Part shown: positions 935-59,250 of the stretch, one piece after another
How the letters are laid out: each line of letters starts with the position of its first letter
Numbering within the stretch: position 1 is the stretch's first letter
NCBI RefSeq assembly: GCF_902713615.1
Contig: NC_052146.1
Span: 306,482,335-306,546,334, forward strand
From: Scyliorhinus canicula
Lineage: Eukaryota
Length of the DNA stretch: 64,000 bases
Direction: 5' to 3'
The notes under the pieces: generated by a model
Database searches by the model: none
What the model was told of the DNA's origin: nothing
The model's input: the letters and a program-made list of their open reading frames with translations, nothing else
Made by a program: the position numbers and the translations under genes

Positions 935-1350
935 CTTTCTGTGTGGAGGCTGGGACCCTTCGTGGTGCTTGGACCACTTTCTGTGTGGAGTCGGGAACCC
1001 TTCGTGGTGCGTGGACCCCACTCTCTGTGTGGAGGCTGGGACCCTTCGTGGTGCATGGACCCCAATCTCCGTGTGGAGTCGGGAACCCTTCGCGGTGCGT
1101 GGACCACTCTCTGTGTGGAGTCGGGGACCCGTCGCGGTGCGTGGACCCCAATCTCCGTGTGGAGTCGGGAACCCTTCGCGGTGCGTGGACCACTCTCTGT
1201 GTGGAGTCGGGGACCCGTCGCGGTGCGTGGACCACTCTCTGTGTGGAGTCAGGGACCCTTTGCGGTGCGTGGACCACTCTCTGTGTGGCAGCAGGCCGCT
1301 CTCTGTGTGGCAGCAGGCCGCTCTCTGTGTGGCAGCAGGCCGCTCTCTGT
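935..1350. repeat. 42/43-bp tandem repeat (~8 copies) followed by a 22-bp repeat (~3 copies)
   Basis: GTGTGGAGTCGGGAACCCTTCGCGGTGCGTGGACCACTCTCT units; GCTCTCTGTGTGGCAGCAGGCC units. Confidence 0.9.
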
Positions 1351-3054: not shown

Positions 3055-3174
3055 CTTGGTAGCGGACGGCCCCCTCACTGAGGATACACCTGTCCCAGCA
3101 GCTCTTTGCTTGTATGAATTGAACACTCTTTTCTTCTTAGTCACGACTTTGCTACAGATGGGTTCATGTCGTTC
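3055..3174 (-). CDS. ZC2HC1B: ZC2HC1B exon 3 ([40 protein letters not shown])
   Basis: attttcag acceptor, gtagga donor, 120 nt; completes the C2HC finger. Confidence 0.9.
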
Positions 3175-6100
3175 CTGAAAATAATAGCAAGCCTTGAGTT
3201 CGGGGGGCGGGGTGGGTCAGAATCAGCTTCCAATAACCTGAAGCGAACTTTGAGCAAGATTTTCCGTCTCAGACTTTATTCCCTATCTCCTTCCCTGCCC
3301 CCATCCCCAGTTAGGATGCTGACTCTGGTGGGACATGTTCCTGGCAGCAGCAACACGTGACCTTTCACCCACACCCTCCACTTGGCAAACACAGTCCCGC
3401 AAAGTCCTGTTTTCTTCCACAGCCAATTGCAAAGCAAAAGGCTCCCTGCTACCCGATTGGGTGATTCTTGACTGTCAGCCAATCAGCCAATTTCCCCGCT
3501 TGCAATCACAATTTTAAAAATGAAAGGAGGTGAAATTAACATTCTTAGAAACAATCCCGTGGCTTTTCTTCAGGAGTTGCTCCCATGGGAATTCTGTGGA
3601 TTCGCCTTTGATTCCGGGAGACTCCAGGGTAATCCCAAGCTCCCATGTTAGTATCTCATGACGTTGACCGAGCAGACCGCCCGCCATTGGCACCATCATG
3701 CAACACCGGGAGCACCACCAAAACAGGATATCCACTCATTGTCATGTTGCTGTGGGATCTTGCTCTGCGCAAATTGGCTGCCGCATTTTCTACATGACAG
3801 CAGTAATGGTCATACCTCAATAATAATAATCTTTATTAGTGTCACAAGTAGGCTTACATCAACACTGCAATAAAGTTACTGTGAAAAGCCCCTACTCGCC
3901 ACATTCCGGCGCCTGTTCGGGTACACAGAGCGAGAATTCAGAATGTCCAATTCACCCAACAAGCACGTCTTTCTGGACTTGTGGGAGGAAACCGGAGCAC
4001 CCGGAGGAAACCCACGCTCACACGGGGAGAACGTGCAGACTCCCCTTGTTTAATAATGCTCCTGTGAGGCACCTTTGGACATTTTATGAGTTAAAGGCAT
4101 CCTATCAATATTGTAAGGTCACCTTCATCGCTTGCTGTGCCTGAGGTCATCAATTATTTATTAAATGGGTTTGTTTTGCTGGTGTTAAAGCCTCAACCAG
4201 CAACTGGCCACAGGCTGCCATCTTTATACCCAAGTCCTATAATAGCGGAGATTTTGTCCACAGACCTTTGTGCTAGCATTGAACAAGGACAGGGAAGATG
4301 TCTGTGATGTTTGCTGTCCCCTACAGTAACCCATCACAGTGAATATTCAAGCTCACAACTGCCTTAGCCGGCCATTTTGAGTCAGCATTAAGAAAGGAAC
4401 TGTTCAGTTTAAGGTGGCTGAGAGGACATTTGATGAGGACTCGAATACTGAGGTAGTATGGGCTGAGTTAAGAAACAGGAAAGGAGAGGTCACCCTGTTA
4501 GGGGGTTTCTATAGGCCTCCGAAAAGTTCCAGAGATGTAGAGGAAAGGATTGCAAAGATGATTCTGGATAGGAGCGAAAGTAACAGGGTAGTTGTTATGG
4601 GGGACTTTAACTTTCCAAATATTAACTGGAAACACTATAGTTCGAGTACTTTAGATGGGTCCGTTTTTGTCTAACGTGTGCAGGAGGGTTTCCTGACACA
4701 GTATGTAGATAGGCCAACGAGAGGCGATGCCGTATTGGATTTGGTACTGGGTAATGAACCAGGACAGGTGTTAGATTTGGAGGTAGGTGAGCACTTTGGT
4801 GATAGTGACCACAATTCGATTACGTTTACTTTAGTGATGGAAAGGGATAGGTATATACCGCAAGGCAAGAGTCATATCTGGGGGAAAGGCAATTATGATG
4901 CGATGAGGCAAGACTTAGGATGCATCGGCTGGAGAGGAAAACTGCAGGGGATGGGCACAATGGAAATGAAACACTTGTCAAGAGGAAGAAAGAGGCTTAT
5001 GTAAAATTGAGAAGTGATGGTTCAGTTAGGGCGCTTGAGAGTTACACATTAGCTAGGAAGGACCTAAAGAGAGAGCTAAGAAGAGCCAGGAGATAGGATG
5101 TATAATCATCTGGAAAGGAATAATTTGATTAGAGATAGTCAACATGGTTTTGTGAAGGGTAGGTCGTGCCTCACAAACCTTATTGAATTCTTCGAGAAGG
5201 TGACCAAATAAGTGGATGAGTGTAAAGCAGTTGATGTGGTGTCTATGGATTTCAGTAAAGTGTTTGATAAGGTTCCCCACAGTAGGCTATTGCAGAAAAT
5301 ACAGAGGCATGGGATTCAGGGTGATTTCGCAGTTTAGATCAGAAATTGGCTAGCTGATAGAAGACAAAGGGTGGTGGTTGATGGGAAATGTTCAGACTGG
5401 TGTCCAGTTACTAGTGGTGCACCACAAGAATCTGTTTTGGGGCCGCTGCTGTTTGTCATTTTGATAAATGACCTGGAGGAGGGCGTAGAAGGATGGGTGA
5501 GTAAATTTGCAGATGACACTAAAGTTGGCGGAGTTGTGGACAGTGCAGAAGGATGTTACAAGTTACAGAGGGACATAGATAAGCTGCAGAGCTGGGCTGA
5601 AAGGTGGCAAATGGAGCTTAATGCAGAAAAGTGTGAGGTGATTCATTTTGGAAGGAATAACAGGAAGACAGAGTACTGGGCTAATGGTAAGAGTCTTGGT
5701 AGTGTGGACGAGCAGAGAGATCTCGGTGTCCATGTACATAGATCCCTGAAAGTTGCCACCCAGGTTGAGACGGTTATTAAGAAGGCGTACGGCGTGTTAG
5801 CTTTTATTGGTAGAGGAATTGAGTTTCGGAGCTATGAGGTCATGTTGCAGCTGTACAAAACTCTGGTGTGGCCACATTTGGAGTATTCCGTGCAGTTCTG
5901 GTCGCCACATTATAGGAAGGATGAGGAAGCATTGGAAAGGGTACAGAGGAGATTTACAAGGATGTTGCCTGGTATGGAGGGAAGATCTGATGAGGAAAGG
6001 CTGAAGGACTTGAGGCTGTTTTCGTTAGAGAGAAGAAGGTTAAGAGGGGACTTAATTGAGGCATACAAGATGATCAGAGGATTAGATAGGGTGGACTTGA

Positions 6101-9100
6101 GAGCCTTTTTCCTCGGATGGTGATGTCCAGCACGAGGGGACATAGCTTTAAATTGAGGGGAGATAGATATAGGACAGATGGCAGAGGTAGGTTCTTTACT
6201 CAGAGAGTGGAATACCCTGCCTGCAACTGTAGTGGACTCGCCAACACTAAGGGCATTTAAATGGTCATTGGATAGACTAATGTACGATAAGGGAATAGTG
6301 TAGACGGGCTTTAGAGGGGTTTCACAGGTTGGCGCAACATCGAGGGCCGAAGGGCCTGTACTGTGCTGTAATGTTCTATGTTTGAAGCCCTCCAGGTCAG
6401 TTTTCCCGTTCGGCCTGTCCAAGGAAGGTATTACCGGTGTGGAAGCTTAATTTCACCAACTCAGGACGTCCCAAAGTACGTTGCAGCTGGTGAGGTAGCT
6501 TTGGGGTGGCACGGTCGCACAGTGGCCAGCACTGCTGCCTCACAACACCAGGGACCCCGGTTCGATTCCAGCCTTGAATGACTATCTGTGCGGAGTCTGC
6601 ACGTTCTCCCGGTGTCTGCATGGGTTTCCTCCGGGTGCTCCGGTTTCCCCTCACAGTTCAATGATGTGTGGGTTGACGTTGGCAGGGAGGGTGCAGGTGG
6701 TAAAGATGAATGTGCTGCCAAGGTCCTGTCGGTTTTTCAATCCCTCCTGATTTTATCTCCCTGATGCCTTTTTCCGACAGGTGGAGGCGCTGGTCTGGGA
6801 ATTTGTGTGGGCGGCGAAGGGACCGTGGCCAAGTGGGATCCTGCTACACAGACAGAGAAGGATTGGCGCTCCCGTAACTGATGCCCTACTATTGGGCAGC
6901 GAATGTGGAGAAGGTGTTGGTGAGGGTCAGCGGAGGGGATCAGGTTGGAGGAGGAATCCTGTAGGGGCTCGCGTTAAGGGCCCTGGTAATGGCTCTGTTA
7001 CCATTAGCCAAGGGGAAGTATACGGGGAGTCCGGGGGTGGAGTCGACTATTAAGATTTGGAATCAGCAGAGGAGGCATTTTAAATTAGACCAGATAGAAC
7101 ATAGAGCATACAGTGCAGAAGGAGGCCATTCGGCCCATCGAGTCTGCACCGACCCACTTAAGCCCTCACTTTCACCATAACCCCGTAACCCAATAACCCC
7201 TCCTAACCATTTTGGACACTAAAGGCAATTTATCATGGTCAATCCATCTAATCTACCCGTATTTGGACTGTGAGACGAAACCGGAGCACCCGGAGGAAAC
7301 CCCGCAGACACGGGGAGAACGTGCAGACTCCGCACAGACAGTGACCCAAGTGGGAATCGAACCTGGGACCCTGGAGCTGTGAAACCACAATGCTCTCCAC
7401 TTGTGCTACCGTGCTGCCCAGATATCGCTGTTGACACCACTGTATGGGAACCACAGGTTTAATCCGGGAGGGATGGATGGGTTTTATAGGTGCTGGAGGG
7501 AGGAGGGGCTGGAGCTTGTCAGAGATATCTTCACGGACGGGAAATCACTGGGTCAGGGATATAACGGAGGGGAATTCACTGGATCAGGGATATCTTCACA
7601 GAGGGGAAATCACTGGGTCAGGGATATCACGGAGGGGAATTCACTGGGTCAGGGATATCACGGAGGGGAAATCACTGGGTCAGGGATATCTTCACAGAGG
7701 GGAATTCACTGGGTCAGAGATGTCACGGAGGGGAAATCACTGGGTCAGGGATATCTTCACAGAGGGGAATTTGCTGGGTCAGGGATATCACGGAGGGGAA
7801 TTCGCTGGGTCAGGGATATCACGGAGGGGAATTCGCTGGGTCAGGGATATCTTCACAGAGGGGAATTCGCTGGGTCAGGGATATCACGGAGGGGAATTCA
7901 CTGGGTCAGGGATATCACGGAGGGGAATTCGCTGGGTCAGGGATATCACGGAGGGGAATTCACTGGGTCAGGGATATCACGGAGGGGAATTCACTGGGTC
8001 AGGAATATCACGGAGGGGAATTCGCTGGGTCAGGGATATCTTCCCGGAGGGGAATTCGCTGGGTCAGAGATATCGTCCCGGAGGAGAATTCGCTGGGTCA
8101 GGGATATCACGAAGGGAAATTCGCTGGGTCAGGGATATCACGGAGGGGAATTTACTGGGTCAGAGATATCACGGAGGGGAATTCACTGGGTCAGGGATAT
8201 TACGGAGGGAAATTCACTGGGTCAGGGATATCATGGAGGGAAATTCACTGGGTCAGGGATATCATGGAGGGGAATTCACTGGGTCAGGGATATCTTCACG
8301 GAGGGGAATCCGCTGGGTCAGGGATATCACGGATGGGAATTCGCTGGGTCAGGGATATCACGGAGGGGAATTCACTGGGTCAGGGATATCTTCACGGAGG
8401 GAAATTCACTGGGTCAGGGATATCTTCACGGAGGGGAATTCGCTGGGTCAGGGATATCTTCACGGAGGGGAATTCGCTGGGTCAGGGATATCACGAAGGG
8501 AAATTCGCTGGGTCAGGGATATCACGGAGGGGAATTCACTGGGTCAGAGATATCACGGAGGGGAATTCACTGGGTCAGGGATATTACGGGGGGGAATTCA
8601 CTGGGTCAGGGTTATCACGGAGGGGAATTCACTGGGTCAGGGATATCACGGAGGGGAATTCACTGGGTCAGGAATATCTTCACGGAGGGGAAATCACTGG
8701 GTCAGGGATATCACGGAGGGGAATTCACTGGGTCAGGGATATCACGGAGGGGAAATCACTGGGTCAGGGATATCTTCACAGAGGGGAATTCACTGGGTCA
8801 GAGATATCACGGAGGGGAATTCGCTGGGTCAGGGATATCACGGAGGGGAATTCACTGGGTCAGGGATATCACGGAGGGGAATTCACTGGGTCAGGAATAT
8901 CACGGAGGGGAATTCGCTGGGTCAGGGATATCTTCCCGGAGGGGAATTCGCTGGGTCAGAGATATCGTCCCGGAGGAGAATTCGCTGGGTCAGGGATATC
9001 ACGAAGGGAAATTCGCTGGGTCAGGGATATCACGGAGGGGAATTTACTGGGTCAGAGATATCACGGAGGGGAATTCACTGGGTCAGGGATATTACGGAGG

Positions 9101-12100
9101 GGAATTCACTGGGTCAGGGATATCATGGAGGGAAATTCACTGGGTCAGGGATATCATGGAGGGGAATTCACTGGGTCAGGGATATCTTCACGGAGGGGAA
9201 TCCGCTGGGTCAGGGATATCACGGATGGGAATTCACTGGGTCAGGGATATCACGGAGGGGAATTCACTGGGTCAGGGATATCTTCACGGAGGGAAATTCG
9301 CTGGGTCAGGGATATCTTCACGGAGGGGAATTCGCTGGGTCAGGGATATCTTCACGGAGGGGAATTCGCTGGGTCAGGGATATCACGAAGGGAAATTCGC
9401 TGGGTCAGGGATATCACGGAGGGGAATTCACTGGGTCAGAGATATCACGGAGGGGAATTCACTGGGTCAGGGATATTACGGAGGGGAATTCACTGGGTCA
9501 GGGTTATCACGGAGGGGAATTCACTGGGTCAGGGATATCACGGAGGGGAATTCACTGGGTCAGGAATATCTTCACGGAGGGGAATTCGCTGGGTCAGGGA
9601 TATCACGGAGGGGAATTCACTGGGTCAGGGATATCACGGAGGGGAATTCACTGGGTCAGGGATATTACGGAGGGGAATTCACTGGGTCAGGAATATCACG
9701 GAGGGGAATTCACTGGGTCAGGGATATCACGGAGGGAAATTCACTGGGTCAGGGATATCTTCCCGGAGGGGAATTCGCTGGGTCAGGGATATCGTCCCGG
9801 AGGAGAATTCACTGGGTCAGGGATATCACGGAGGGGAATTCGCTGGGCCAGGATATCACAGAGGGGAATTCACTGGGTCAGGGATATCACGGAGGGGAAT
9901 TCACTGGGTCAGGGATACCGTCCCGGAGGAGAATTCACTGGGTCAGGGATATCACGGAGGGGATTTCACTGGGTCAGGGATATCACGGAGGGGAATTCGT
10001 TGGGCCAGGATATCACAGAGGGGAATTCACTGGGTCAGGGATATCACGGAGGGTAATTCACTGGGTCAGGGATATCATGGAGGGGAATTCACTGGGTCAG
10101 GGATATCTTCACAGAGGGGAATTCACTGGGTCAGGGATATCACCGAGGGGAATTCGCTGGGTCAGAGATATCTTCACAGAGGGGAATTCACTGGGTCAGG
10201 GATATCACAGAGGGGAATTCGCTGGGTCAGGGATATCACCGAGGGGAATTCGCTGGGTCAGAGATATCTTCACAGAGGGGAATTCACTGGGTCAGGGATA
10301 TCACGGAGGGGAATTCGCTGGGTCAGGGATATCACGGAGGTGAATTCGCTGGGTCAGGGATATCACGGATGGGAATTCGCTGGGTCAGGGATATCACGGA
10401 GGGGAATTCACTGGGTCAGGGATATCACGGAGAGGAATTCGCTGGGTCAGAGATATCGTCCCGGAGGAGAACTCGCTGGGTCAGGGATATCTTCCCGGAG
10501 GGAAATTCACTGGGTCAGGGATATCACGGAGAGGAATTCGCTGGGTCAGAGATATCGTCCCGGAGGAGAACTCGCTGGGTCAGGGATATCTTCCCGGAGG
10601 GAAATTCACTGGGTCAGGGATATCACGGAGGGGAATTCGCTGGGTCAGGGATATCTTCACGGAGGGGAATTCGCTGGGTCAGGGATATCACGGAGGGGAA
10701 TTCGCTGGGTCAGGGATATCTTCACGGAGGGGAATTCGCTGGGTCAGGGATATCACGGAGGGGAATTCACTGGGTCAGGGATATCACGGAGGGGAATTCG
10801 CTGGGTCAGGGATATCTTCCCGGAGGGGAATTCACTGGGTCAGGGATATCACGGAGGGGAATTCACTGGGTCAGGGATGTCACGGAGGGGAATTCGCTGG
10901 GTCAGGGATATCTTCCCGGAGGGGAATTCACTGGGTCAGGGATGTCACGGAGGGGAATTCGCTGGGTCAGGGATATCACGGAGGGTAATTCGCTGGGTCA
11001 GGGATATCTTCACGGAGGGGAATTCACTGGGTCAGGGATATTACGGAGGGGAATTCACTGGGTCAGGGATATTACGGAGGGGAATTCACTGGGTCAGGGA
11101 TATCACGGATGGGAATTCGCTGGGTCAGGGATATCACGGAGGGGAATTCACTGGGTCAGGGTTATCTTCCCGGAGGGAAATTCACTGGGTCAGGGATATC
11201 TTCCCGGAGGGGAATTCACTGGGTCAGGGTTATCACGGTGGGGAATTCGCCTGGTCAGGGATATCACGGAGGGGAATTCGCTGGGTCAGGGATATCACGG
11301 ATGGAAATTCGCTGGGTCAGGAATGTCACGGAGGGAAATTCACTGGGTCAGGGATACCACGGAGGGGAATTCGCTGGGTCAGGGATATCACGGAGGGGAA
11401 TTCGCTGGGTCAGGGATATCACGGAGGGGAATTCGCTGTGTCAGGATATCACGGAGTGTAATTCGCTGGATCAGGGATATCTTCCCGGAGGGGAATTCGC
11501 TGGGTCAGGGATATCTTCACGGAGGTGAATTCGCTGGGTCAGGGATATCCCGGAGGGGAATTCGCTGGGTCAGGGATATCTTCACGGAGGGGAATTCGCT
11601 GGGTCAGGGATATCCCGGAGGGGATTTCACTGGGTCAGGGATATCACGGAGGGGAATTCGCTGGGTCAGAGATATCTTCACAGAGGGGAATTCACTGGGT
11701 CAGGGATATCTTCACGGAGGGGAATTCGCTGGGTCAGGGATATCACGGAGGGGAATTCGCTGGGTCAGGGATATCACGGAGGGGAATTCACTGGGTCAGG
11801 GATATCACGGAGGGGAATTCGCTGGGTCAGGGATATCTTCCCGGAGGGGAATTCACTGGGTCAGGGATATCACGGAGGGGAATTCACTGGGTCAGGGATA
11901 TCATGGAGGGGAATTCACTGGGTCAGGGATATTACGGAGGGGAATTCACTGGGTCAGGGATATCACGGAGGGGAATTCGCTGGGTCAGGGATGTCACGGA
12001 GGGGAATTCGCTGGGTCAGGGATATCACGGAGGGGAATTCACTGGGTCAGGGATATCACGGAGGGGAATTCACTGGGTCAGGGATATTACGGAGGGGAAT

Positions 12101-15100
12101 TCACTGGGTCAGGGATATTACGGAGGGGAATTCACTGGGTCAGGGATATCACGGAGGGGAATTCGCTGGGTCAGGGATATCACGGAGGGGAATCCACTGG
12201 GTCAGGGATATCACGGATGGGAATTCGCTGGGTCAGGGATATCACGGAGGGGAATTCACTGGGTCAGGGTTATCTTCCCGGAGGGAAATTCACTGGGTCA
12301 GGGATATCACGGAGGGGAATTCGCTGCGTCAGAGATATCTTCACAGAGGGGAATTCGCTGGGTCAGGGATATCACAGAGGGGAATTCGCTGGGTCAGGGA
12401 TATCACGGAGGGGAATTCGCTGGGTCAGGGATATCACGGAGGGGAATTCACTGGGTCAGGGATATCACGGAGGGGAATTCGCTGGGTCAGGGATATCACG
12501 GAGGGGAATCCACTGGGTCAGGGATATCTTCCCGGAGGGGAATCCACTGGGTCAGGGATATCACGGATGGGAATTCGCTGGGTCAGGGATATCACGGAGG
12601 GGAATTCACTGGGTCAGGGTTATCTTCCCGGAGGGAAATTCACTGGGTCAGGGATATCTTCCCGGAGGGGAATTCACTGGGTCAGGGATATCTTCCCGGA
12701 GGGGAATTCACTGGGTCAGGGATATCTTCCCGGAGGGGAATTCGCTGGGTCAGGGATATCACGGAGGGGAATTCACTGGGTCAGGGATATTACGGAGGGG
12801 AATTCGCTGGATCAGTGATATCTTCACGGAGGGGAATTCGCTGGGTCAGGGATATCACGAAGGGGAATTCACTGGGTCAGGGATATCACGGAGGGGAATT
12901 CGCTGGGTCAGGGATATCTTCCCGGAGGGGAATTCACTGGGTCAGGGATATCTTCCCGGAGGGGAATTCACTGGGTCAGGGATATCACGGAGGGGAATTC
13001 ACTGGGTCAGGGATGTCACGGAGGGAAATTCGCTGGGTCAGGGATATCTTCACGGAGGGGAATTCACTGGGTCAGGGATATTACGGAGGGGAATTCACTG
13101 GGTCAGGGATATCACGGAGGGGAATTCGCTGGGTCAGGGATATCACGGAGGGGAATCCACTGGGTCAGGGATATCACGGATGGGGATTCGCTGGGTCAGG
13201 GATATCACGGAGGGGAATCCACTGGGTCAGGGATATCTTCCCGGAGGGGAATCCACTGGGTCAGGGATATCACGGATGGGAATTCGCTGGGTCAGGGATA
13301 TCACGGAGGGGAATTCACTGGGTCAGGGTTATCTTCCCGGAGGGAAATTCACTGGGTCAGGGATATCTTCCCGGAGGGGAATTCACTGGGTCAGGGATAT
13401 CTTCCCGGAGGGGAATTCACTGGGTCAGGGATATCTTCCCGGAGGGGAATTCGCTGGGTCAGGGATATCACGGAGGGGAATTCACTGGGTCAGGGATATT
13501 ACGGAGGGGAATTCGCTGGATCAGTGATATCTTCACGGAGGGGAATTCGCTGGGTCAGGGATATCACGAAGGGGAATTCACTGGGTCAGGGATATCACGG
13601 AGGGGAATTCGCTGGGTCAGGGATATCTTCCCGGAGGGGAATTCACTGGGTCAGGGATATCTTCCCGGAGGGGAATTCACTGGGTCAGGGATATCACGGA
13701 GGGGAATTCACTGGGTCAGGGATGTCACGGAGGGAAATTCGCTGGGTCAGGGATATCTTCACGGAGGGGAATTCACTGGGTCAGGGATATTACGGAGGGG
13801 AATTCACTGGGTCAGGGATATCACGGAGGGGAATTCGCTGGGTCAGGGATATCACGGAGGGGAATTCGCTGGGTCAGGGATATCACGGAGGGGAATTCAC
13901 TGGGTCAGGGATATCTTCCCGGAGGGGAATTCACTGGGTCAGGGATATCTTCCCGGAGGGGAATTCACTGGGTCAGGGATATCTTCCCGGAGGGGAATTC
14001 ACTGGGTCAGGGATATCACGGAGGGGAATTCGCTGGGTCAGGGATATCACGGAGGGGAATTCACTGGGTCAGGGATATTACGGAGGGGAATTCGCTGGAT
14101 CAGTGATATCTTCACGGAGGGAAATTCACTGGGTCAGGGATACCACGGAGGGGAATTCGCTGGGTCAGGGATATCACGGAGGGGAATTCGCTGGGTCAGG
14201 GATATCACGGAGGGGAATTCGCTGGGTCAGGGATATCACGGAGGGGAATTCGCTGGGTCAGGGATATCACGGAGGGGAATTCACTGGGTCAGGGATATCA
14301 CGGAGGGGAATTCGCTGTGTCAGGATATCACGGAGGGGAATCCACTGGGTCAGGGATATTACGGAGTGTAATTCGCTGGATCAGGGATATCTTCCCGGAG
14401 GGGAATTCGCTGGGTCAGGGATATCTTCACGGAGGGGAATTCGCTGGGTCAGGGATATCCCGGAGGGGAATTCGCTGGGTCAGGGATATCTTCACGGAGG
14501 GGAATTCGCTGGGTCAGGGATATCCCGGAGGGGAATTCACTGGGTCAGAGATATCACGGAGGGGAATTCACTGGGTCAGGGATATCTTCACGGAGGGGAA
14601 TTCGCTGGGTCAGGGATATCTTCACGGAGGGGAATTCGCTGGGTCAGGGATATCTTCACGGAGGGGAATTCGCTGGGTCAGGGATATCCCGGAGGGGAAT
14701 TCGCTGGGTCAGGGATATCCCGGAGGGGAATTCACTGGGTCAGGGATATCTTCACGGAGGGGAATTCACTGGGTCAGGGATATCTTCACGGAGGGGAATT
14801 CGCTGGGTCAGGGATATCCCGGAGGGGAATTCACTGGGTCAGGGATATCTTCACGGAGGGGAATTCGCTGGGTCAGGGATATCCCGGAGGGGAATTCACT
14901 GGGTCAGGGATATCTTCACGGAGGGGAATTCGCTGGGTCAGGGATATCCCGGAGGGGAATTCACTGGGTCAGGGATATCTTCACGGAGGGGAATTCGCTG
15001 GGTTGGATGAGCTGCCGGAGAGGTTTGCGTTCCCGAGGGGGAGTGAGTTTAGGTACCTACAGGTGCGGGGCTTTGTCCGAAAGGAGCTGCCGACATTCCC

Positions 15101-18100
15101 AAACTATCGGAGTACACACTCCTGGAGATGTTGCTGCTCCCAGATGAGGCGTGGGAGGGCAGGACCGGGGATATATACAGTTGGTTGGGAGAGCAGGGCA
15201 AGGCATTAGTAGAAAGGATTAAGTGGGAGGGGGGGAGTTGGGGTGGGAGATAGGACGGGGGCTCTGGTTTGAGGTAATGCGGTGAGTGAACTCACCCTCC
15301 TCCTGTGCGAGAATGAGTTTGATTCAGTTTACACTGGTGCACAGGGTCCACTGAACTCGGACTGGGATGAATGGGTTCTTCCCGGGGGGGGAGTGGATGG
15401 ATGTGAGTAATGTGGGCGGGAATGGTGAATTACGCTCACATATTCTGGGGATGTGAGAAGTTGGAGAGTTTTGGGGAGGCGGTGTCTGGACCTTATCGAG
15501 GATAATGGGGGCCGAGATGAAGCCGGATCCCCTGATGGGGATCTTTGGGCTCTCGGACGTGCCGGAGCTGCTGGATGGACAGGAGGCCGATATCGTGGCC
15601 TTCAGCTCTCTGATTCCCCGGTGACGGATTCTATTGAATTGAAGGTTGGACACTTCACCGGGGGTTGCGGCCTGGCTGGGAGGTCTGTTCCAGTTTCTCC
15701 AGTCGGAAAAGATTAAGTTTTCTTTAAGGGGGTCAGAAGAGGGCTTTGAGTTACAGTGGAGGCTGTTCATAACGGTATATGAGGGAGGAGCTTTTGTCAT
15801 GGGGGCAGTGGGATGGGAAGGGAAGGGGTTAAAAGGGGAAAATGGACAAATAGTTAACTCTGTTTTGTTGGAATGTGTTTTTGTTGATATTCTTACGTTT
15901 GGAATAAAAAATCTTTTTTTTAAAAAGCTGTGTGGGTTCGGTGGATTGGCCGTGCGAAATTACTCCGTAGTGTCCAAAGGTTTGGTGGGATTCTGGGCAT
16001 AGGGTGGGGGATTGGGATTAGGCAGGTTGTTCTTTCAGAGGGTCGGTGCAGATTCGATGGGCCGAATGGCCTCCTTCTGTACTGCAGGGATTCTATGATT
16101 CTGTAAAAACATTTGACACGTGCAACGCCACCTGAGGAGGTATTTGGTCAGGTGACCAAAATTCAAAGAGATAGGTTTGAAGGAGTGTCCTAAAGGAAGA
16201 ACGTGAGTTTGAGATGCGGACAGGTATCCGGAGCCTCGGCAATTGAACTCACGAGCGGCACCCAATGGCGGGTGATTAAAATCGGGGGTGCCACAAGAGG
16301 TCAGAATTAGAGGACTTTGGGGCTGGTGGAGAGTCACAGAGATCGGGAGGAGTGAGGATGAGAGGGAGTTGTAAACAAGGATGAGAATTTATAAATGTAG
16401 ATGTTGCTGGACCAGAAGCTGATGTGGGTCAGTGAGCTCAGGGCTGGTAGGGCAATGGGGCCTTCTGCGTTAAGACACAGGCAGAAGAGTTTGGGATGTC
16501 TGAAATCATGGTTTATGAAATAGAAACAAGCACAGTTACACTCAATATGGAAAACCATAAAGCTCCCAGAGATTCCGAGCAGGATGTGGAAGGCAGAGAA
16601 GGAAACTAAGGCAATGAATCCTGTACCAACTCACCAGACTACTGGATTCAAAACTCCTTCCGCAGATTCTACATGGCACCAGGTTGAGATTCTGCTCTGT
16701 GTGCAAGAAAAGGGTGAAATAAATAACATGCCAACACACTCACTGTTACTGGATTGTAATCTGGAGGTCTAGATTCAAATGCCACCGGAGGTAGAAGGTG
16801 CTCTCGGTAAAAGTCGCCATGAAACAGTCAACATTGGTGCAAAGTCTCAGCAGCTGGTTCCCTTTAGGGAAGGAAGTCTGCCGTTCTCACCCAAGTCAGG
16901 CTCAGTATGTGACTCCAGTCCCACACCAAGTTGACTCTCAGAACTGCCCAGCACACCATTCAATTGCCTCCCAAGAGTAATTGGAGTTGGATAATGCATC
17001 ACCAATAACCACATCCGGAAAATGAACGGGGAAATATATTTGGTCCATTCTTATCCCTTTGCGTGGACAGAAGCAGTAATAGACCATGATTGCTAATAAA
17101 GACGCGGGAAGATCTGATTTGTGAAGGGACATTTGGCCCATTGAACCCATTCCTTTCGGTAGCTATAATGATATGCATAAGCAATTCTGTACGTTAAAAA
17201 AAATTAGACTTGCAACCAGCAGGTGGCAGTAGAAGTACACAACGTGACACTGTAACTTCGGGGAGTCTGAGTGAGGAGTCGTCGGGGATAGTCGTGTTTT
17301 GCATTAGCTCTCGTAATCTCGTTGTTAAAATTTACAGTTCGTTAGTAGTATTAGTATTGTTTTCTACCCACGTTTTTGTAATTCAATAAATCTTAACTAG
17401 TCATGAACTAGACGTTATTTGGTGCACTGACTCAATCATTGCAATGCACTAGAACATAACAGTAGCTGCGGCCGAGGGTGGAGATGCACACCTCTTGATG
17501 TCAGATGGATGTGGATTCAAATTCCAGTCCAGAGACTTGAGTCAGAGTGCAGGAGGGAGATAGAGAACCCAGTAGAGTGGTGCAACGACAACAATCTCTC
17601 CCTCAATGTCACCAAAACCAAGGTACTGTTTATTGACTTCAGGAAGCAAAGTTCTGTACACACCCCTGTCTGCATCAACGGGGCTGAGGTGGAGATGGTT
17701 GACAGCTTCAAATTCCCAGTGGTGCACATCACCAATAATCTGTCCTGGTCCACCCACGAGGACACTACGACCAAGAAAGCACAACAGCGCCTATACTTTC
17801 TCAGGAAACTAAGGAAATTCGGCATGTCCACATTAACCCTTACCAACATTTACAGATGCACCATAGAAAGCATCCTATCGGGCTGCATCATAGCCTGGTA
17901 TGGCAACTGCTCGGCCCAGGGCCGTAAGAAACTACAGAGAGTTGTGAACACAGCCCAGTCCACCATGCAAACCCGCCTCCCATCCATTGACTACACCTCC
18001 CGCTGCCTTGGGAAAGCGGGCAGAATAATTAAGGCCCCCCCCCCCCCCCCCCCCCAAATCCGGGTTATTCTCTCTTCCAACTTCTTCCATCGGGCAGGAG

Positions 18101-21100
18101 ATACAAAAGTCTGAGAACACGCACGAACAGGTTCAAAAACAGCTTCTTCCCCACTGTTACCAGGGGCCTGAATGGCCCTCTTATGGACTGACCTGACGTC
18201 TTCACACATCTTCTCTACTGAGTAGCACTATACTCCTGTATGCTTCACCCGATGTCTATGTCTATGTATTTACACTGTGCATTTCTGTATGTCCTATGTT
18301 TTACATGAATGGAACGATCTGACTGCACTGTACGCAGAGCAAATCTTTTCACTGTACCTCAGTACACGTGACAATAAATCTAAATGCAATCTTGAGCGAT
18401 CTAGGCAGGCACTCTAGTGCAGTGCTGAGGGAGTGCTGCACTGTCAGACGTTTTGGCCTCTCATACAAGCCGTCAATCTAAGGCCCTGTCTATTCCGACT
18501 GGTGGATACAAAGGATCCCAAGAGACTACTTCAAAGAACAGCAGGGGAGTTATCCGTCATGTCCGGCCAAAATGTTTGTCCCTTGACCAACATCACTAAA
18601 ATGGATGAACTGGTTGTCATCATATTGCTGTTTGTGGGATCTTACTGTGCACAATTTATACCACTGCATGAGATTATTTTCCTCCACACCTGCCTCAGTA
18701 AATATAAGAGGCGGGATTCTCCCCTACCCGGCGGGGCGGGGGGTCCCGGCGCTGAGGGGTGGCGTGAACCACTCCAGCATCGGGCCTTCCCAAAGGTGCG
18801 GAATCCTCCACACCTTCAGGGGCTAGGCCGGCCCAGAGTGGTTTGCGCTCCGCCGGCCGGCGGGGAAGGGGCTTGGCACCACGCCAACCGGCGCCGAAGG
18901 GCTTCCGCCAGCCGGTTCAAGTTGGCGCATGCGCGGGAGCGCCAGCGTGTGCTGGCGTCATCCCAGCGCATGCGCAGGGGGGGGTTTCACCTCCACGTCT
19001 TTTACACCAGCCGACGCAGAGGAATAGAGTGCCCCCACAGCACAGGCCAGCCTGCGGATCAGTGGGCTGGAGAATTGCCGGGGGGGGGGGCTCTACCAGC
19101 GGCCACAGGCCGGCGCGGCGCGATTCCCGCCCCCGCCAAATCCCCGGAGCCGGAGAATTCGGCAGCCGGCGGGGGCGAGATTCACACCGCCCACCCCCCC
19201 CCCCCTCCAGCGATTCGCCGACCCGGCGAGGGATCGGAGATTCCCACGCAAGGTTGGAGAATCCCGCCCAATGTTCCCAGTGATCACTGGAATGGCAGCT
19301 TATTGGCAGCGGCAGAGGGGCTGGGGTAGATCAGGGGGCTAAGGGAGTGACAGCACTGGATGTGAGGATACAGGAGTGTGAGGAGAGGCCACCGTGAGTG
19401 GCCAAAACAAAAGCTCCCAGGTTGAAGAGAGTGGGGGAGAAAACCGAGGCCTAGTGGGCAAGGATGACCGCATGCTGAGATTTCAACAGAGCGCAGGTGT
19501 TGGTCAAGGCTCAGTGACGCGCACGCCTCACCTTTTGGACAGAAGGTCATGAGTTCAACTCCCAGTTGAACATGTGACACAGCTGATACTCCCCGTTCAA
19601 TACTCAGGCAAACCCCTGGATTCTACCTTTCAGATGAGACAGGAAGTTGAGGTCATTCTGCCCTTGCAGGTGGAAGTAAAAGATCCCATCGTGACATTAT
19701 CCTGGGTCAATATCTATCCCTCAGCATTCAAACCGATAGCATTGATGTTGGTGGGATCTTTCTTTGTCCAAATTATCTGCTATCTTTTGTGATGATCCCA
19801 GCTGCTGTTGCTAATGGACAGTCAGGTCCCAGAATGGAACCCCAGCTCGATAGATTCAAACATTTATTTTTTGTTTCAAGATTTTGATTTGATTTGATTT
19901 TTGATTTGATTTATTGCCACAGATACCGAAGTACAGTGAAAAGTATTTTTCTGCGGCCGAGGGAACGTACACAGTGCGTACATAGTAGACAAAAAGAATA
20001 ATCAACAGAGAACATTGACAAATGGTACATCAATGAACAAACGTGGATGAACAGTGTCACAGGACAGCTGGTTAACTTTCAACAAATGAATAAAACATTT
20101 ATTAAACAATAAAAGATTGACTATAATGCACCACCCTTCACCCCAGCTGTATCTTTATATATATATTTGCAAAATCCATCTTATACTCTAATACTCTCAG
20201 TAAGTACACAGTCCACATAAGCCAATAGGCAAACAGCGTCCTGTTCTGGGTGTGCTTAACGGGTATTTTCCTGGTGTTTGCAGTGCCGAGATCAACGCCG
20301 CTGTTAAACGGCTCTCTGTTCTTTTCTCGGGCCTCAGCGAGGAAGGCCCCACCGAGCAAGGAAGGCCCCACCGAGCGAGGAAGGCCCCGACGGGCGAGGA
20401 AGGCCCCACCGAGCGAGGAAGGCCCCACCGAGTGAGGAAGGCCCCGACGGGCGAGGAAGGCCCCACCGAGCGAGGAAGGCCCCACCGAGCGAGGAAGGCC
20501 CCCCCGAGCGAGGAAGGCCCCACCGAGCGAGGAAGGCCCCACCGAGCGAGGAAGGCCCCCCAAGCAAGGAAGGACCCACCGAGTGAGGAAGGCCCCCCCG
20601 AGCGAGGAAGGCCCCACCGAGCGAGGAAGGCCCCACCGAGCGAGGAAGGACCCACCGAGTGAGGAAGACCCCCCCGAGCGAGGAAGGCCCCACCGAGCGA
20701 GGAAGGCCCCACCGAGCAAGGAAGGCCCCGACGGGCGAGGAAGGCCCCACCGAGCGAGGAAGGCCCCACCGAGCGAGGAAGGCCCCACCGAGCGAGGAAG
20801 GCCCCACCGAGCGAGGAAGGACCCACCGAGCGAGGAAGGCCCCCCCGAGCGAGGAAGGACCCACCGAGCGAGGAAGGCCCCCCCGAGCGAGGAAGGCCCC
20901 ACAGAGCGAGGAAGGCCCCACCGAGCGAGGAAGGCCCCACCGAGCGAGGAAGGCCCCCCCGAGCGAGGAAGGCCCCACCGAGCGAGGAAGGCCCCGACGG
21001 GCGAGGAAGGCCCCACCGAGCGAGGAAGGCCCCACCGAGCGAGGAAGGCCCCGACGGGCGAGGAAGGCCCCACCGAGCGAGGAAGGCCCCACCGAGCGAG

Positions 21101-24100
21101 GAAGGCCCCGATGAGCGAGGAAGGCCACACCGAGCGAGGAAGGCCCCACCGAGCGAGGAAGGCCCCACCGAGGCCACACTTAACTTCATTTCCTGCACAA
21201 AGGAGGTCAGCTCGGCAGTACAGGAAGAGATTGGGGTACCGTTTATCTCTCAACCCCCCAAAGTGACACCAAAACCACCCCCAATGACCCAACTTACCGA
21301 TTAGGGCATCCTCGAGTCCCCCTCACCCCACCTCACAAGGGCAAAGCACCCTCATGCCCGATTCCCAGAATGTACATTGACATAGAACAGTACAGCACAG
21401 AACAGGCCCTTCGACCCTCGATGTTGTGCCGAGCATTGTCAGATAACCAAGATCAAGCTATCCCACTCCCTGTCATTGTGATGTGCTCCATGTGCCTATC
21501 TAATAACCGCTTGAAAGTTCCTGAAGTGTCCGACTCCACTATCACAGCAGGCAGTCCATTCTACATCTAACCACTCTCTGAGTAAAGAACCTACTTCGGA
21601 CATCCCTCCTATATCTCCCACCCTGAACCTTGTAGTTATGCCCCCTTGTAACAGCTACATCCACCCGAGGAAATAGTCTCTGAACATCCACTCTGTTTAT
21701 CCCCCTCATCATCTTATAAACCTCTATTAAGTCGCCTCTCATCCTCCTCCGCTCCAAAGAGAAAAGGCCTAGCTCCCTCAACCTTTCCTCATAAGACCTA
21801 TCTTCCAAACCAGGCAGCATCCTGGTAAATCTCCTTTGCACCCTTTCCAATCCTTCCACATCCTTCCTATAATGAGGTGACCAGAACTGCACACAATACT
21901 CCAAATGTGGTCACACCAGGGTCATGTACAGTTGCAGCATAACCCCACGACTCTTAAACTCAAGCCCCCTGTTAATAAATGCTAACACACTATAGGCCTT
22001 CTTCACGGCTCTGTCCACTTGAGTGGCAACCTTCAGAGATCTGTGGACATGAACCCCAAGATCTCTATTCCTCCACATTCCTCAGAACCCTGACGTTGAC
22101 CCTGTAATCCCCATTCAAATTTTTCCCACCAAAATGAATCACCTCGCACTTATCAGGGTTAAACTCCATCTGCCATTTTTTGGCCCAGCTCTGCATCCTA
22201 TCAATGTCCCTTTGCAGCCTACAACAGCCCTCCACCTCATTCACTACTCCATGCCACCTCAGGTACCTTGGCACTGCCACCCTGGCAGTTCCCCTGCCAG
22301 CCTAGCAGTGACACCTGGGTACGCGAGTGTTTCCAAACTCCAGTCTTGAAGAAGAAACTTTGAAACTTCCCCCTAACAAAGCTTTCTCTTGAAGGCCTAC
22401 ACCAAGGATCCAGCTCCAGGTTTTTAAACTCTCCTTTCAGTATTCCTGTCTTGGATTCACATGCATTCAAGCTTCCACGCATTTTCTCAGGTGCTCAGCT
22501 CTCCAACAAAGCCCCAATGCTTCGCAGACTGTATGAAGATGTCACCAAACTTTCAATTATCCTTGAATTTCTGCCTTCTCACCTAACCAGCTTTAAATCT
22601 GCTTCTTGCAGCTGCCTCTTTGACTCAGTGCACTTTCTCTGATTTTTACTTGAATTCTCCAGAACAGGATCTTTTTCAACTCCTTGTTCTTTGCTACTCC
22701 CATTTAACTGCCTTGCTGAGATATACTTTTGTCAAAGCGCTTGCTTTCTGGGACTTTATTTTTCATTTTGGAAAGTCTGCTCTCTGCAGCTCTCTTGTCC
22801 TGTCCAGCTTCTTCTGGCTTAAGCTTACAACTAACTCCAAAGTTCTTTCTGTCCTCGGGTGGCCCCGGTTGCTAAGCAACAGCCTAGTTTTCCTTTAAGC
22901 CCAGTTTGCTTTCAGGTCATAAACCTCCATGACCAGACAAGCATCGTAACCAAACTGAAGTCTTTTAAATACAGAAACATAAAATTAAACTTACAGCTAT
23001 ACCTTATTTTTAAACCCCAGAAATACAAATATAAAATACTTTAAAAGACCTGTTTCCAGACTATTTTTGAAATACTCAATTGAACAAATACTTTTTGGCA
23101 TTGCCACACAGAGTGCAGAGTGAAATACAAGGCACCGTCTACAATATCACACTCTTAACATATGGGAAGCAAAAATGGAAACTTGCTGACTGGTTCAAGA
23201 CTAACATCACTGTGAGGGAATCGGTCAATGAAGCCATGCAGTCGGCTCTCACTGATTACAAGGGAGATCCGAGTGAGCAGACACTGAATGTACCCAGAGT
23301 CGCTCAACGCCAATGAATAGTAATGACAATTTTGCCAGAAAATCTAGATGTTCTTCAACATCGGGAATGCTGGGGGTTTGGAGGATCAAAAGGCAACAGG
23401 CCCATCAGCAAAGAAAACAAAGGCAGTTGGGGGGGGGGGGGGTTTCATCGCCTACTGCAATAAATGGTGGTGAGCTGCCTTCTTGAACCGCTGCAGTCCA
23501 TATGGTGCAGGTACACCTACAGTGCTGTTAGGGAGGGCGTTCTAGAAGTTTGACCCAGTGACAATGAAGGAACATGGATAGATCCGCCAAGGGATGGGAA
23601 ATAAATGATGCCCCACATCCCAAGAACGAATAAAAAAAAATGTATGTTCAAATATATCCAAGACAGGATGGTGTGGGGTTTGGGAGGGGAACTTGCAGGT
23701 GGTGGTGTTCTCTTGCGTCTGCTGCCTTTGGTCGTCCAGGTGGTAGTGGTCACAGAATGTGTTGCCATGTGGAGCCTGGATGAGTTAGCGTAGTGAGCTT
23801 TGTAGCTGGTACGTACTGTTGTCACTGTGCATGGCTGCTGGAGTGAGTATGTAAGATGGTAGTTGTGGTGCCAGTCGAGAGGGCTGCCATTTCCTGGATG
23901 ACATCAGTTTCTGGAGCGCTGCTGCAGTTGTATTTATTCAGCAAGTGGGAAATATTCCATCGCACTCCTGTCTTGTGCCTTCTGCCATCAAGCTCTGCTT
24001 TATGCCAAATAATGATTTTTTTTCATGATTTTTAATGCACCCATTGGAAACTTGAATTGAACTTTTAAAAAGACTTCAATAAAAAAGAGCCTATATATAT

Positions 24101-31376: not shown

Positions 31377-31409
<33 letters not shown>

Positions 31410-35014: not shown

Positions 35015-36040
35015 CCGTGCCTCTTATAAGGGCATCAAGCCTCCTGGCGCCCTCTGGGCCAACCTGCGGCAGGTCCTCCCACAAAACTCTGCAAGCATTC
35101 GTGCTGGACGGATCTGGGGAGAAAAGGGCACCGTAGAAGTTTCGAATTTGGGCCCTAATCTCCTCTGGATCTGAGACAAGGGACCCGTTGTCGGCCAGTA
35201 GCGTAAGGAGCTGCTGACAGACTCCGCACCGTTTATCCAGGGGGAGCCACCCCAGGACTCGACAATTTGCAGTCGTGCAGCGTGCCCTTCTCTCTGTACA
35301 CCAGCCGCAGGGCCGGGTCCTCATCGGGCTGACCGAGACGTGACTCCAAGTCGAGCACCTCCTTCTCCAACTCCTCGACCCTGGATTTCCACCTCTTTAT
35401 CGACCCCCCCTCGCATACTCCTGACAGAAGGTACACACATGACTCTTGCCCATGTCCCACCATAGCCTCAAGGAGGGGAAGCCTCCCTGCTTCCTTCTCC
35501 AGCTGGTCCAGAAGCGACGAAACAAGCCCAGGAACCGCTCATCCTCCAGCAGCAGCTTGTTAAAATGCCAGTGGGCAGATTGCGACTGAGCGCGAGACAG
35601 GGCGAGCCCCATCCACACAAAACGGTGGTCCGAGCAAGGCACCTGCTGCACAGGTACGCCCTTGAAATGTAGAGGCAGCCGATTCTGGAAGCTCCGACCC
35701 CAGGCCTCACAAAGGTGAAGATGCTGGAGTCAGGATGGAGAGTCTGGCAGATGGCCACCAAGTTAAAGAACCCGACCAAGTTCCTTAACTTCACCACCGC
35801 ACGACAGCTGCACTGGGCACAGAGATGGTCCTGTATCTCAAGGATGCAATTAAACATGCCCCCCCCCCCCCCCCCCCCCTCCGGACGATGCACACGCCCG
35901 TGGCGATGGTGCCAAGATGAGTGGACACTTGCTCGAAGAAAGTCGTCTGCAACTGGCCAGCCTGGGGAGCATAGACATTCACAAGCTGAAGTACCTCACC
36001 GCAGACCGTCAGGTGCAGCAAGCAGCCTGGCTGTGGCTCC
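35015..36040 (-). mobile_element. Tx1-clade LINE ORF2 fragment (endonuclease and linker)
   Basis: LQLVNVYAP, GG-FNC, SDHRFV, HWHFNKLLLEDERF..FW..WR.KQGGFPSLRLWWDMGK. Confidence 0.85.
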
Positions 36041-58356: not shown

Positions 58357-58590
58357 CTGATTGGCTGGAATCGTGAAGCACTCCGGGATACTGGCTGACT
58401 GTCTCACCAACCTCCGAGCACTGATTGGCTGGAACTGTGAAGCACTCCGGGATACTAGCTGACTCACACCAACATCCGAGCACTGATTGGCTGGAACTGT
58501 GAAGCACTCTGGGATACTAGCTGACTCATACCAACCTCCGAGCACTGATTGGCTGGAACCGTGAGGAACCCTGGGATACTGGCTGACTGT
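58357..58590 (-). promoter_or_regulatory. LTV1 promoter: ~62-bp tandem repeat (~3.7 copies), each with an AGCCAATCAG CCAAT box
   Basis: ctgattggct at 58357, 58421, 58483 and 58545; TGACTCA in copies 2 and 3; starts about 90 bp upstream of the ATG. Confidence 0.65.
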
Positions 58591-58689
58591 TGTGACCTCC
58601 GTAAATTGGAGGATGTGCAGTTGCATCAAATCGCTGATAAGGAGGAAGGGCGGGGTTGTGTCTCATTTAATCCCCGTGAAACACGACAG

Positions 58690-59250
58690 GTCCAGCATTG
58701 GGTTAGATACAGAGTAAAGCTTCCTCTACACTGTCCCCATCAAACACTCCCAGGACAGATACAGCACGGGGTTAGATACAGAGTAAAGCTCCCTCTACAC
58801 TGTCCCCATCAAACACTCCCAGGACAGGTACAGCACGGGGTTAGATACAGAGTAAAGCTCCCTCTACACTGTCCCATCAAATACTCCCAGGACAGGTACA
58901 GCACGGGATTAGATACAGAGTAAAGCTCCCTCTACACTGTCCCATCAAATACTCCCAGGACAGGTACAGCATGGGGTTAGATACAGAGTAAAGCTCCCTC
59001 TACACTGTCCCCATCAAACACTCCCAGGACAGGTACAGCACGGGGTTAGATACAGAGTAAAGCTCCCTCTACACTGTCCCATCAAATACTCCCAGGACAG
59101 GTACAGCACGGGGTTAGATACAGAGTAAAGCTCCCTCTACACTGTCCCATCAAATACTCCCAGGACAGGTACAGCACGGGATTAGATACAGAGTAAAGCT
59201 CCCTCTACACTGTCCCCATCAAACACTCCCAGGACAGGTACAGCATGGGA
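58690..59250. repeat. 68-69-bp tandem repeat, ~8 copies (GGTTAGATACAGAGTAAAGCTCCCTCTACACTGTCCCCATCAAACACTCCCAGGACAGGTACAGCACGG)
   Basis: Directly visible, highly homogeneous. Confidence 0.95.

Follow-up and report, generated by a model that had tools for sequence, protein, structure and literature searches.

How a minisatellite begins is rarely visible, because its founder sequence and junctions have usually decayed. The 64,000 nucleotides of shark DNA analysed here (hereafter the window) contain an intronic array of short tandem repeats with retrotransposon sequence on both sides, which raises the question of whether the array arose from that retrotransposon and, if so, from which segment and at what stage. 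We consider it very probable that it is a locus-specific minisatellite, born at the DNA level after insertion from 34 bp of a dead L1-like ORF2 relic, which lies in antisense orientation within an intron of a C2HC zinc-finger gene. The features of the locus are listed in Table 1.

Table 1. Features of the locus, with positions counted from the first nucleotide of the window.
Feature	Position	Strand	Basis
Next host exon, which finishes the finger (ERHEPIC...)	3055-3174	-	Clear acceptor, putative donor
L1-like ORF2 tail, part 1 (post-RT region; frameshifts, stops)	6655-7096	+	Match to second L1 at 61971-62382
tRNA-derived SINE within the L1 relic	7097-7417	-	Direct reading
L1-like ORF2 tail, part 2, directly left of the array	7425-7517	+	blastp to fish L1-like ORF2 proteins
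Minisatellite, 234 units in 74 variants	7518-15001	+	Own parse of units
Block duplication, 892 bp (28 units), two copies	7911-9646	+	844 nt compared, 99.3% identity, 6 differing sites
Block duplication, 709 bp (22 units), two copies	12477-13865	+	680 nt compared, 100% identity
L1-like ORF2 tail, part 3, right of the array	15002-15910	+	blastp; match to second L1; direct reading
Host exon, first part of the C2HC zinc finger	16635-16696	-	AG acceptor, GTGAGT donor, direct reading
Second, diverged L1-like ORF2 tail, amplified segment present once	61784-62760	+	Collinear with both flanks

Structure of the array

The first-pass annotation had described a 7.5-kb array at 7518-15002 with units of about 32 bp, amplified roughly 240-fold. 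The extent agrees with our parse to within one nucleotide and the copy number is nearly right, whereas the unit length is not, since 32 bp is the mean of two real lengths: 152 units are 31 bp long, 78 are 34 bp and the remaining four are 30 bp. All are arranged head to tail in the same orientation, as in a minisatellite with a unit of 10-100 bp. Tandem Repeats Finder likewise reported a single array (7531-15003, period 31, 233.7 copies, 89% matches, score 10578). A search with the 31-bp unit, allowing up to three mismatches, gave 153 matches, all on the plus strand between 7556 and 14971, where shuffled sequences lead us to expect none, and found no unit elsewhere in the 64-kb window. We therefore regard the array as a single-locus repeat in the kilobase range, of 7,484 bp, a length taken from the assembly alone, with support from contig depth that is rough.

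The two ends of the array differ from its middle. Both terminal units (7518-7551 and 14968-15001) have the 34-bp form, which is ancestral, while the 31-bp form is derived from it by a 3-bp deletion, makes up 65% of the units and dominates the interior. Variants are ordered along the array in a non-periodic pattern, on which re-duplicated multi-unit blocks of 65, 709 and 892 bp are superimposed. The youngest pair is without any difference, and the 709-bp and 892-bp duplications are recent. Two sites within the unit contain a CpG: at the TCGC site 106 units have CG and 125 have CA, a split that CpG decay probably explains, and at the ACGG site 212 have CG, 14 have CA and six have TG. The plus strand of the array is G-rich, with a GC content of 55% and a GC skew of +0.37. 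Judged by eye, the unit resembles the classical GGGCAGGA minisatellite core no more than loosely, and no good CTCF-like core was seen in it.

The retrotransposon relic on both sides

The array interrupts the tail of an L1-like ORF2 that survives in three parts. Part 1 is 58% identical to the second L1 in the window over 61971-62382 at the nucleotide level (E 3.5e-15; tblastx E 1.8e-18), and the 5' end of the relic is either truncated or adjoins a SINE. Another SINE separates part 1 from part 2; it is bounded by a 7-bp target-site duplication (CCAGATA at 7090-7096 and 7418-7424), across which the L1 frame reads ...HFKLDQ / ISLLTPL.... Part 3 aligns with the second L1 at 62513-62745 and contains a broken Cys/His region near 15400-15480 and an AATAAA near 15905.

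Further evidence comes from the junctions. The flanks were compared with fish L1 ORF2 proteins separately, piece by piece, with the L1 pieces left unjoined and no consensus built. In one protein, P0024, the left flank matched residues 959-998 (blastp E 7.5e-07) and the right flank residues 998-1035 (E 6.8e-07). The same holds throughout: both flanks matched in the right order in 17 proteins, and in every one of these the left flank ends and the right flank starts on the same residue, so the only change at the site is the presence of extra copies of one segment. The flanks thus continue the parent element without loss, in these proteins and in the second L1, as is the case for tandem repeats derived from a transposable element (TE). 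The flank peptides quoted in the first-pass annotation are present, and the observation that it named as fatal, flanks that do not join into a continuous ORF2, is the opposite of what we find. Its central proposal, that one short ORF2 segment was amplified in place, is supported both by the 17 external proteins and by the second L1, whose sequence runs collinear with the two flanks.

The full-length proteins among the matches show an Exo_endo_phos and RVT_1 architecture, with zf-RVT also in two of them, and P0024 is named "LINE-1 reverse transcriptase-like" by its source. The relic is thus homologous to proteins that combine an APE-type endonuclease with a reverse transcriptase (RT), which identifies it as L1-like (L1/Tx1 group); the sequence at 6655-15910 keeps the post-RT tail only and has no RT domain to place, and membership of the L1 clade proper is putative. 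A Pfam search with the short flank peptides returned no match, and we know of no Pfam model for this part of ORF2. A search with the last 101 amino acids of the array and the right flank (14700-15206) gave no protein homologue at E <= 1e-5, to which, being length-limited, we attach little weight.

The second L1 had been put forward as an internal single-copy control. The peptide LFIDGFTFAG...GNTFRYMQVRAFVKKQV is indeed present at about 62430-62575, the 146-aa ORF of this copy has 3009 matches among protein representatives, and the nucleotide alignment shows collinearity with both array flanks. A piece of the left flank (7421-7551) gave no significant DNA match to the second L1, which is broken at that place by homopolymer runs, G24 and C27. 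Because of these runs the control carries less weight for the exact segment than had been assumed, a gap that the external proteins close.

Coding content of the unit

The unit encodes VRDIFT[D/E]G-EFAG, a segment that is now present 234 times. In each unit, one G needed for an intact ORF2 frame is missing from the stretch coding for ...TEG-EF..., and direct reading of 14986-14996 shows the resulting 1-nt offset between VRDIFTEG and EFAG, just as the shift had been described earlier. Since the missing G is common to every unit, the founder copy was already frameshifted. Plus-strand ORFs nevertheless run through the array for up to 1065 aa. They are most likely a by-product of the repeat, because the unit has no stop triplet in any plus-strand frame and both 31 and 34 equal 1 modulo 3. 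A Pfam search with one of these ORFs gave no domain, and a length-limited search for similar predicted proteins of 93-296 aa found none.

The host gene

Against Pfam zf-C2HC_2, the exon at 16635-16696 scores 27.8 bits (cut-off 27), covering positions 1-17 of the 25 in the profile. When the minus strand below 16600 was scanned for motifs, the exon at 3055-3174 was the sole candidate with a good polypyrimidine tract; it supplies H-x3-C and gives a finger spacing of C-x2-C-x11-H-x3-C. The host gene thus has a C2HC-type finger (zf-C2HC_2) split across the intron that contains the array, as judged from Pfam searches of each exon singly. Atlas look-ups with the two exons returned zf-C2HC_2 clusters only, with scores below 0.82. 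The identification of the gene as ZC2HC1B, as opposed to ZC2HC1A, ZC2HC1C or ZNF474, and of the intron as number 2, both from the first-pass annotation, is therefore putative. As the gene is on the minus strand, both relic and array are antisense to it. By our exon model the intron spans 13,460 nt (3175-16634), and the array occupies 55.6% of it, in line with the earlier estimate of about 55% of 13.5 kb.

Short-read contigs and copy number

Public short-read runs from this organism yield contigs that carry the unit, and contigs from two samples contain both the 31- and the 34-bp forms. One contig of 796 nt, with two differences, extends from the right flank 30 nt into the last unit, one letter short of the 31 on the array side that the bridging rule demands. 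The contig comparison covered the region beside the array, with about nine units. Summed contig depth, a rough guide, was 10-150 in the array bins, compared with about 3-5 in single-copy pieces, about 2000 in the neighbouring L1 bin (15020-15119) and above 10^6 in the SINE bins. By this rough measure the array, at tens of times the single-copy depth, four orders of magnitude below the SINE and also below the adjacent L1 bin, is not an abundant dispersed satellite of the PROsat kind discussed below. A few further loci with the unit are compatible with the depth.

Alternative explanations

It could be argued that the array is real and that its size is misstated, by collapse or over-expansion in the assembly, the perfect 709-bp duplication being one such error. 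We think this improbable. In its favour, 680 nt of the 709-bp block are repeated at 100% identity, and the interior and total length depend on the assembly, with short-read contigs as the only data. Against it stand the 74 distinct variants in an ordered, non-periodic pattern, the six differing sites between the 892-bp blocks, and the occurrence of both unit forms in contigs of two samples at tens of times the single-copy depth. Much less probable is that the L1 source element already carried the repeat, or a seed of it, or that the reverse transcriptase produced it at insertion, which would make it a feature of an L1 subfamily. Internal tandem repeats do occur in some TEs (PMC9659126), and for the first one or two copies such an origin is possible. 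However, the segment occurs once in all 17 collinear L1-like proteins and in the second L1, the block duplications and the majority form of 31 bp clearly arose at this locus, and the contrast in depth between the L1 bin (about 2000) and the array bins (10-150) indicates that the array is missing from most copies of this L1 family in the genome.

The least probable of these alternatives is that the array is functional, for example by offering binding sites, acting as an insulator, giving rise to antisense RNA or encoding a repeat protein in the long plus-strand ORFs. The ORFs of up to 1065 aa and the G-richness of the plus strand (GC 55%, GC skew +0.37) might be taken to point that way, but the ORFs follow automatically from a stop-free unit of length 1 modulo 3, the one searched against Pfam matched no family, the length-limited search returned no predicted protein of 93-296 aa resembling them, and the unit itself comes, frameshifted, from a dead transposon. 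No unit-bearing contig was found in a related organism with about 92% identity in the neighbouring exon region, a weak comparison that also speaks against function and hints that the array is young. Judging from the sequence, the array is most likely without function and merely tolerated in the intron.

Origin and growth of the array

The sequence shows a relic that was 5'-truncated, was later hit by the SINE and had lost one G in the ...TEG-EF... stretch. Under our preferred explanation of a local birth after insertion, the initial duplication may have arisen when replication slipped or switched template at a GT microhomology of only 2 nt (GCTT/GT at the start of the segment, GCTGG/GT at its end), an event that itself lies beyond observation. 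In-register unequal exchange, gene conversion or replication slippage could then have driven growth and turnover; any of these would account for the homogenised interior with ancestral units at the edges.

Similar processes are known from other genomes. In human, at least 7,276 arrays, corresponding to 23% of minisatellites and satellites, are derived from TEs (Ahmed and Liang, 2012, PMC3389668). The shark array resembles these in that a TE piece was repeated head to tail in place with local duplication of units, and differs from them in its origin from LINE coding sequence and in its very large size (234 units, 7.5 kb). In comparison with the human set, both junctions are kept to the residue, and for this reason the exact founder segment can be named. 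Satellites derived from L1 ORF2 include PROsat in Phodopus roborovskii and Pvc20 in the harbour seal, and the HinfI repeat of chicken is derived from CR1 ORF2 (reviewed in PMC9659126). As in these cases, the tandem monomer resembles part of a LINE ORF2. PROsat, Pvc20 and HinfI are, however, satellite families known by the similarity of their monomers to ORF2, whereas the shark array is a single locus that still lies within its parent element and, unlike PROsat-type families, is not abundant genome-wide according to contig depth.

As cited in PMC3389668, Alu-derived minisatellites are flanked by short direct repeats (Jurka and Gentles, 2006), and a slipped-strand model places minisatellite birth at non-contiguous repeats (Taylor and Breden, 2000). 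As far as these cases are summarised there, the shark array is like them in having a founder bounded by short similar motifs that was then expanded, and unlike them in that the bounding similarity consists of GT only, or of an imperfect GCT(T/GG)GT. The slipped-strand model fits the shark array, although it is not demonstrated.

Implications

The suggestion that retrotransposon coding DNA has given rise to a satellite at this locus is upheld by our data, although the phenomenon is already on record. Tandem repeats derived from TEs, and from L1 ORF2 in particular, have been described before (PMC9659126; PMC3389668), and the shark array introduces no new principle; it is a large and very clean instance of a process known from other animals. 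One could go further and propose a genome-wide propensity to expand short G-rich segments of any origin into multi-kilobase intronic minisatellites by one shared mechanism. We regard this as unlikely. If it were true, the array would still be active and hypervariable, as the divergence of 0-0.7% between the block duplications suggests, and, with its junctions intact and its founder identifiable, it would offer a natural system in which to follow the birth and growth of a minisatellite.

This one locus displays the 34-bp founder from L1 ORF2, the prior frameshift, both junctions, the ancestral units at the edges, the derived majority unit and the nested block duplications. It is therefore a good teaching or model case for how transposon DNA can seed tandem repeats, and for how an intron can grow to more than twice its length.

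Array structure

Tandem Repeats Finder reported one array, at 7531-15003 (period 31, 233.7 copies, 89% matches, score 10578). With unit boundaries set at the conserved joint CTGG|GTCAG, the stretch 7518-15001 parses into 234 units, 152 of 31 bp, 78 of 34 bp and 4 of 30 bp, and these lengths replace the 32-bp unit of the first-pass annotation. The units comprise 74 distinct variants, and the 34-bp form (ATATCTTCACGG) is set apart from the 31-bp form (ATATCACGG) by three extra bases. Allowing up to 3 mismatches, the 31-bp unit was matched 153 times in the 64-kb window, always on the plus strand and within 7556-14971, whereas 0 matches are expected in shuffled sequence. The repeat is therefore real, far above chance and, within the 64-kb window, restricted to the array locus. 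The array has a GC content of 55% and a GC skew of +0.37, and its G-rich strand is thus the plus strand.

Plus-strand open reading frames of 870-1065 aa cross the array. There are 0 stop triplets in any plus-strand frame of the 31-bp or the 34-bp unit, and both lengths are 1 mod 3, so each frame cycles through three phases without a stop. An array ORF had no match in Pfam, and no similar predicted proteins of 93-296 aa, the lengths covered by the search, were found with the array and right flank as query. We take the long ORFs to be a by-product.

Features of the array locus and of other repeats in the window
Feature	Position	Strand	Details
Relic part 1	~6655-7096	+	aligns with second L1 61971-62382: 58% nt identity, E 3.5e-15; tblastx E 1.8e-18
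tRNA-derived SINE inserted in relic	7097-7417	-	7-bp target-site duplication CCAGATA
Relic part 2	7425-7517	+	abuts array start directly
Relic part 3	15002 to ~15910	+	aligns with second L1 at 62513-62745
Tandem block duplication	7911-8754 vs 8803-9646		892 bp, 28 units; 99.3% over 844 nt
Tandem block duplication	12477-13156 vs 13186-13865		709 bp, 22 units; 100% over 680 nt
Host exon	16635-16696	-	AG acceptor, GTGAGT donor; Pfam zf-C2HC_2 27.8 bits (cut-off 27), profile positions 1-17 of 25
Homopolymers in second L1	62243-62256 (G14), 62390-62413 (G24), 62486-62512 (C27)		take the place of ORF2 sequence
Other long homopolymers	31377-31408 (G32), 18035-18055 (C21), 35859-35879 (C21), 40282-40301 (C20)
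Tandem array	938-1288		42/86 bp x 8
Tandem array	58357-58588		62 bp x 3.7
Tandem array	58685-59249		68 bp x 8, higher orders 137 and 205 bp
Tandem array	60916-61099		40/58/98 bp x 2

Origin in an L1-like ORF2

The array splits a plus-strand L1-like ORF2 tail, an old and broken relic. The L1 frame continues without a break across the SINE insertion (...HFKLDQ / ISLLTPL...), and the part beyond the array holds several frameshifts and then a broken Cys/His region, with an AATAAA near 15905. Upstream in the same intron lies another LINE relic (4414-6123, plus strand), with Exo_endo_phos_2 and RVT_1 and a CR1/L2-like look.

The second L1 of the window had been proposed as a single-copy control for the amplified segment. 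It aligns collinearly on either side, but at the exact founder segment the control is weaker than claimed, as the element is split there by the G24 and C27 runs; the short left flank piece gave no significant DNA match to it. Outside reference proteins were therefore sought, with the second L1's intact ORF (61784-62221; 146 aa) as query against 1.84 billion protein representatives. This gave 3009 matches, and the full-length ones carry an APE-type endonuclease and RVT_1, two of them zf-RVT as well. Database matches to the L1-like ORF2 include P0024, a teleost protein named "LINE-1 reverse transcriptase-like protein" by its source, and P0026, a medaka reverse-transcriptase protein.

The flanks were compared one at a time, unjoined, by blastp to 150 proteins listed of the 3009 matches. 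The left query (7422-7541) ends in ...VRDIFTDG and the right query (14988-15101) starts with GEFAGLDEL..., its shared junction G being read from the last unit of the array. Among these 150 proteins 20 were matched by both flanks, collinearly in 17, and in all 17 the last G of the left flank and the first G of the right flank are one protein residue; in the other three the matches lie at unrelated positions and are of chance level only (E 0.002 to 9.6). The flanks thus join into a continuous ORF2, as had been supposed. The intact protein carries ...V-x-D-x-x-x-x-G-x-F-x-x-x-x-E-L... once, and the relic the same with the 34 bp coding VRDIFT(D/E)G-EFAG multiplied; apart from these 34 bp, no ORF2 sequence was gained or lost at the array.

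Direct reading of the last unit shows that GAG GGG (14986-14991, V-frame) and GGG GAA (14988-14993, E-frame) share one base. For an intact frame GAG GGN GAA would be needed; the unit thus lacks one G, and the 1-nt shift seen in the first-pass annotation is real. The same G is absent from the first unit and from the consensus of the units, and the founder copy was therefore frameshifted before amplification started. It was dead DNA at that time, not coding sequence under selection.

Host intron and neighbouring repeats

The L1 and the array run antisense to the host gene, which is encoded on the minus strand and may be the ZC2HC1B of the first-pass annotation or another zf-C2HC_2 gene, with the array in its putative intron 2. 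The next exon of the host gene was sought on the minus strand, below the exon in the table, as an AG-preceded phase-0 continuation with H-x3-C, and the scan left a single candidate with a good polypyrimidine tract, at 3174. This candidate exon would supply the rest of the finger, at the C-x2-C-x11-H-x3-C spacing of the family. Profile searches ran on single exons rather than on the joined two-exon model, and Atlas look-ups on the exons returned low-scoring zf-C2HC_2 clusters only. By this exon model the intron spans 3175-16634 (13,460 nt) and the array occupies 55.6% of it, close to the share of about 55% estimated earlier.

Minisatellites are plentiful across the window. A 19-bp minisatellite at 20336-21172 (44 copies, 90% matches) lies in a stretch with a GC content of 62% and a strong AT skew of +0.48. 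Two tandem arrays with a 55-58-bp unit (36695-36954 and 36954-37759) are joined at 36954; their consensus units look reverse-complementary, and they would be an inverted (palindromic) minisatellite pair whose units each contain a long run of G or C. In all, 19 homopolymer runs of G or C, 12-32 nt long, occur in the window. Such a density of long poly-G/poly-C tracts is unusual and could be a feature of the genome or an effect of sequencing or assembly.

Short-read evidence

The public read data were short-read contigs, from the source organism (two samples) and from two further organisms, and the mapping covered 14720-17719, from the last units of the array into the right flank. A 796-nt contig from the source organism spans 14974-15769 with two differences; it begins 30 nt inside the last unit, one letter below the bridging rule. 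Unit-bearing contigs were found in both source-organism samples and in organism C, some with the 3-bp difference between the 31-bp and 34-bp forms.

Summed contig depth was 10-150 in the array bins, about 3-5 in single-copy pieces, about 2000 in the neighbouring L1 bin and >10^6 in a SINE bin. Contig depth is no copy number, and within that limit the array values fit one locus with a few hundred units; they fit neither an abundant dispersed satellite nor a repeat that this L1 family has in most of its copies. In organism B the neighbouring exon region (16362-16826) was present at ~92% identity, and no short-read contig fell on 14720-14919, which hints weakly that the array arose after the split from that organism.

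The element fragment at 15920-16119 reached a summed contig depth of >10^6 in all four runs, the two other organisms included, which makes it an extremely abundant repeat that the sampled species have in common. A 201-aa ORF at 17509-18111 (plus strand) matches Pfam ALKBH8_N (E 2e-13); because its read depth is very high (>10^5), it is part of an abundant repeat, probably a retroelement tail rather than a gene.

Growth and significance of the array

The terminal units (7518-7551 and 14968-15001) both have the ancestral 34-bp form, matching ORF2 (I-F-T), and 65% of the units are of the derived 31-bp form. At its 3' end the array consists of 65-bp dimers in a row, one 31-bp plus one 34-bp unit in each. 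Two CpGs are the main polymorphic sites: at TCGC, 106 units have CG and 125 have CA; at ACGG, 212 have CG, 14 have CA and 6 have TG. From the edge and interior forms, the dimers, the block duplications and the CpG variation we infer a history in three stages. The seed duplication may have arisen at very short microhomology, between GCTT|GT at the founder start and GCTGG|GT at its end. Expansion and turnover would have followed through in-register unequal exchange, gene conversion or replication slippage, with new variants spreading through the interior while the edges stayed ancestral, and methylation-driven CpG decay would have run alongside. Divergence between units is ~11% and the youngest blocks are identical, which suggests either that the array is long-lived and still active or that the 100% block is an assembly error.

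Tandem repeats that stem from transposable elements, and from LINE ORF2 in particular, are already known. Of the human minisatellites and satellites, at least 7,276 (23%) have a transposable-element origin and expand as units are duplicated locally, and known initiation models account for few of these arrays (Ahmed and Liang, PMC3389668). The monomers of PROsat in hamster and Pvc20 in harbour seal come from L1 ORF2, and those of the chicken HinfI repeat from CR1 ORF2 (reviewed in PMC9659126), much like the catshark array. In the library searched, no paper connects the catshark with minisatellites. The observation is confirmed and the L1 origin proposed in the first-pass annotation is supported, with corrections to the unit lengths and to the strand on which the array lies with respect to the host gene, and with the gene name and intron number taken as provisional. 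The array is most likely neutral and generated locally, and to the known cases the catshark locus adds one from a shark, of unusual size and unusually easy to read.
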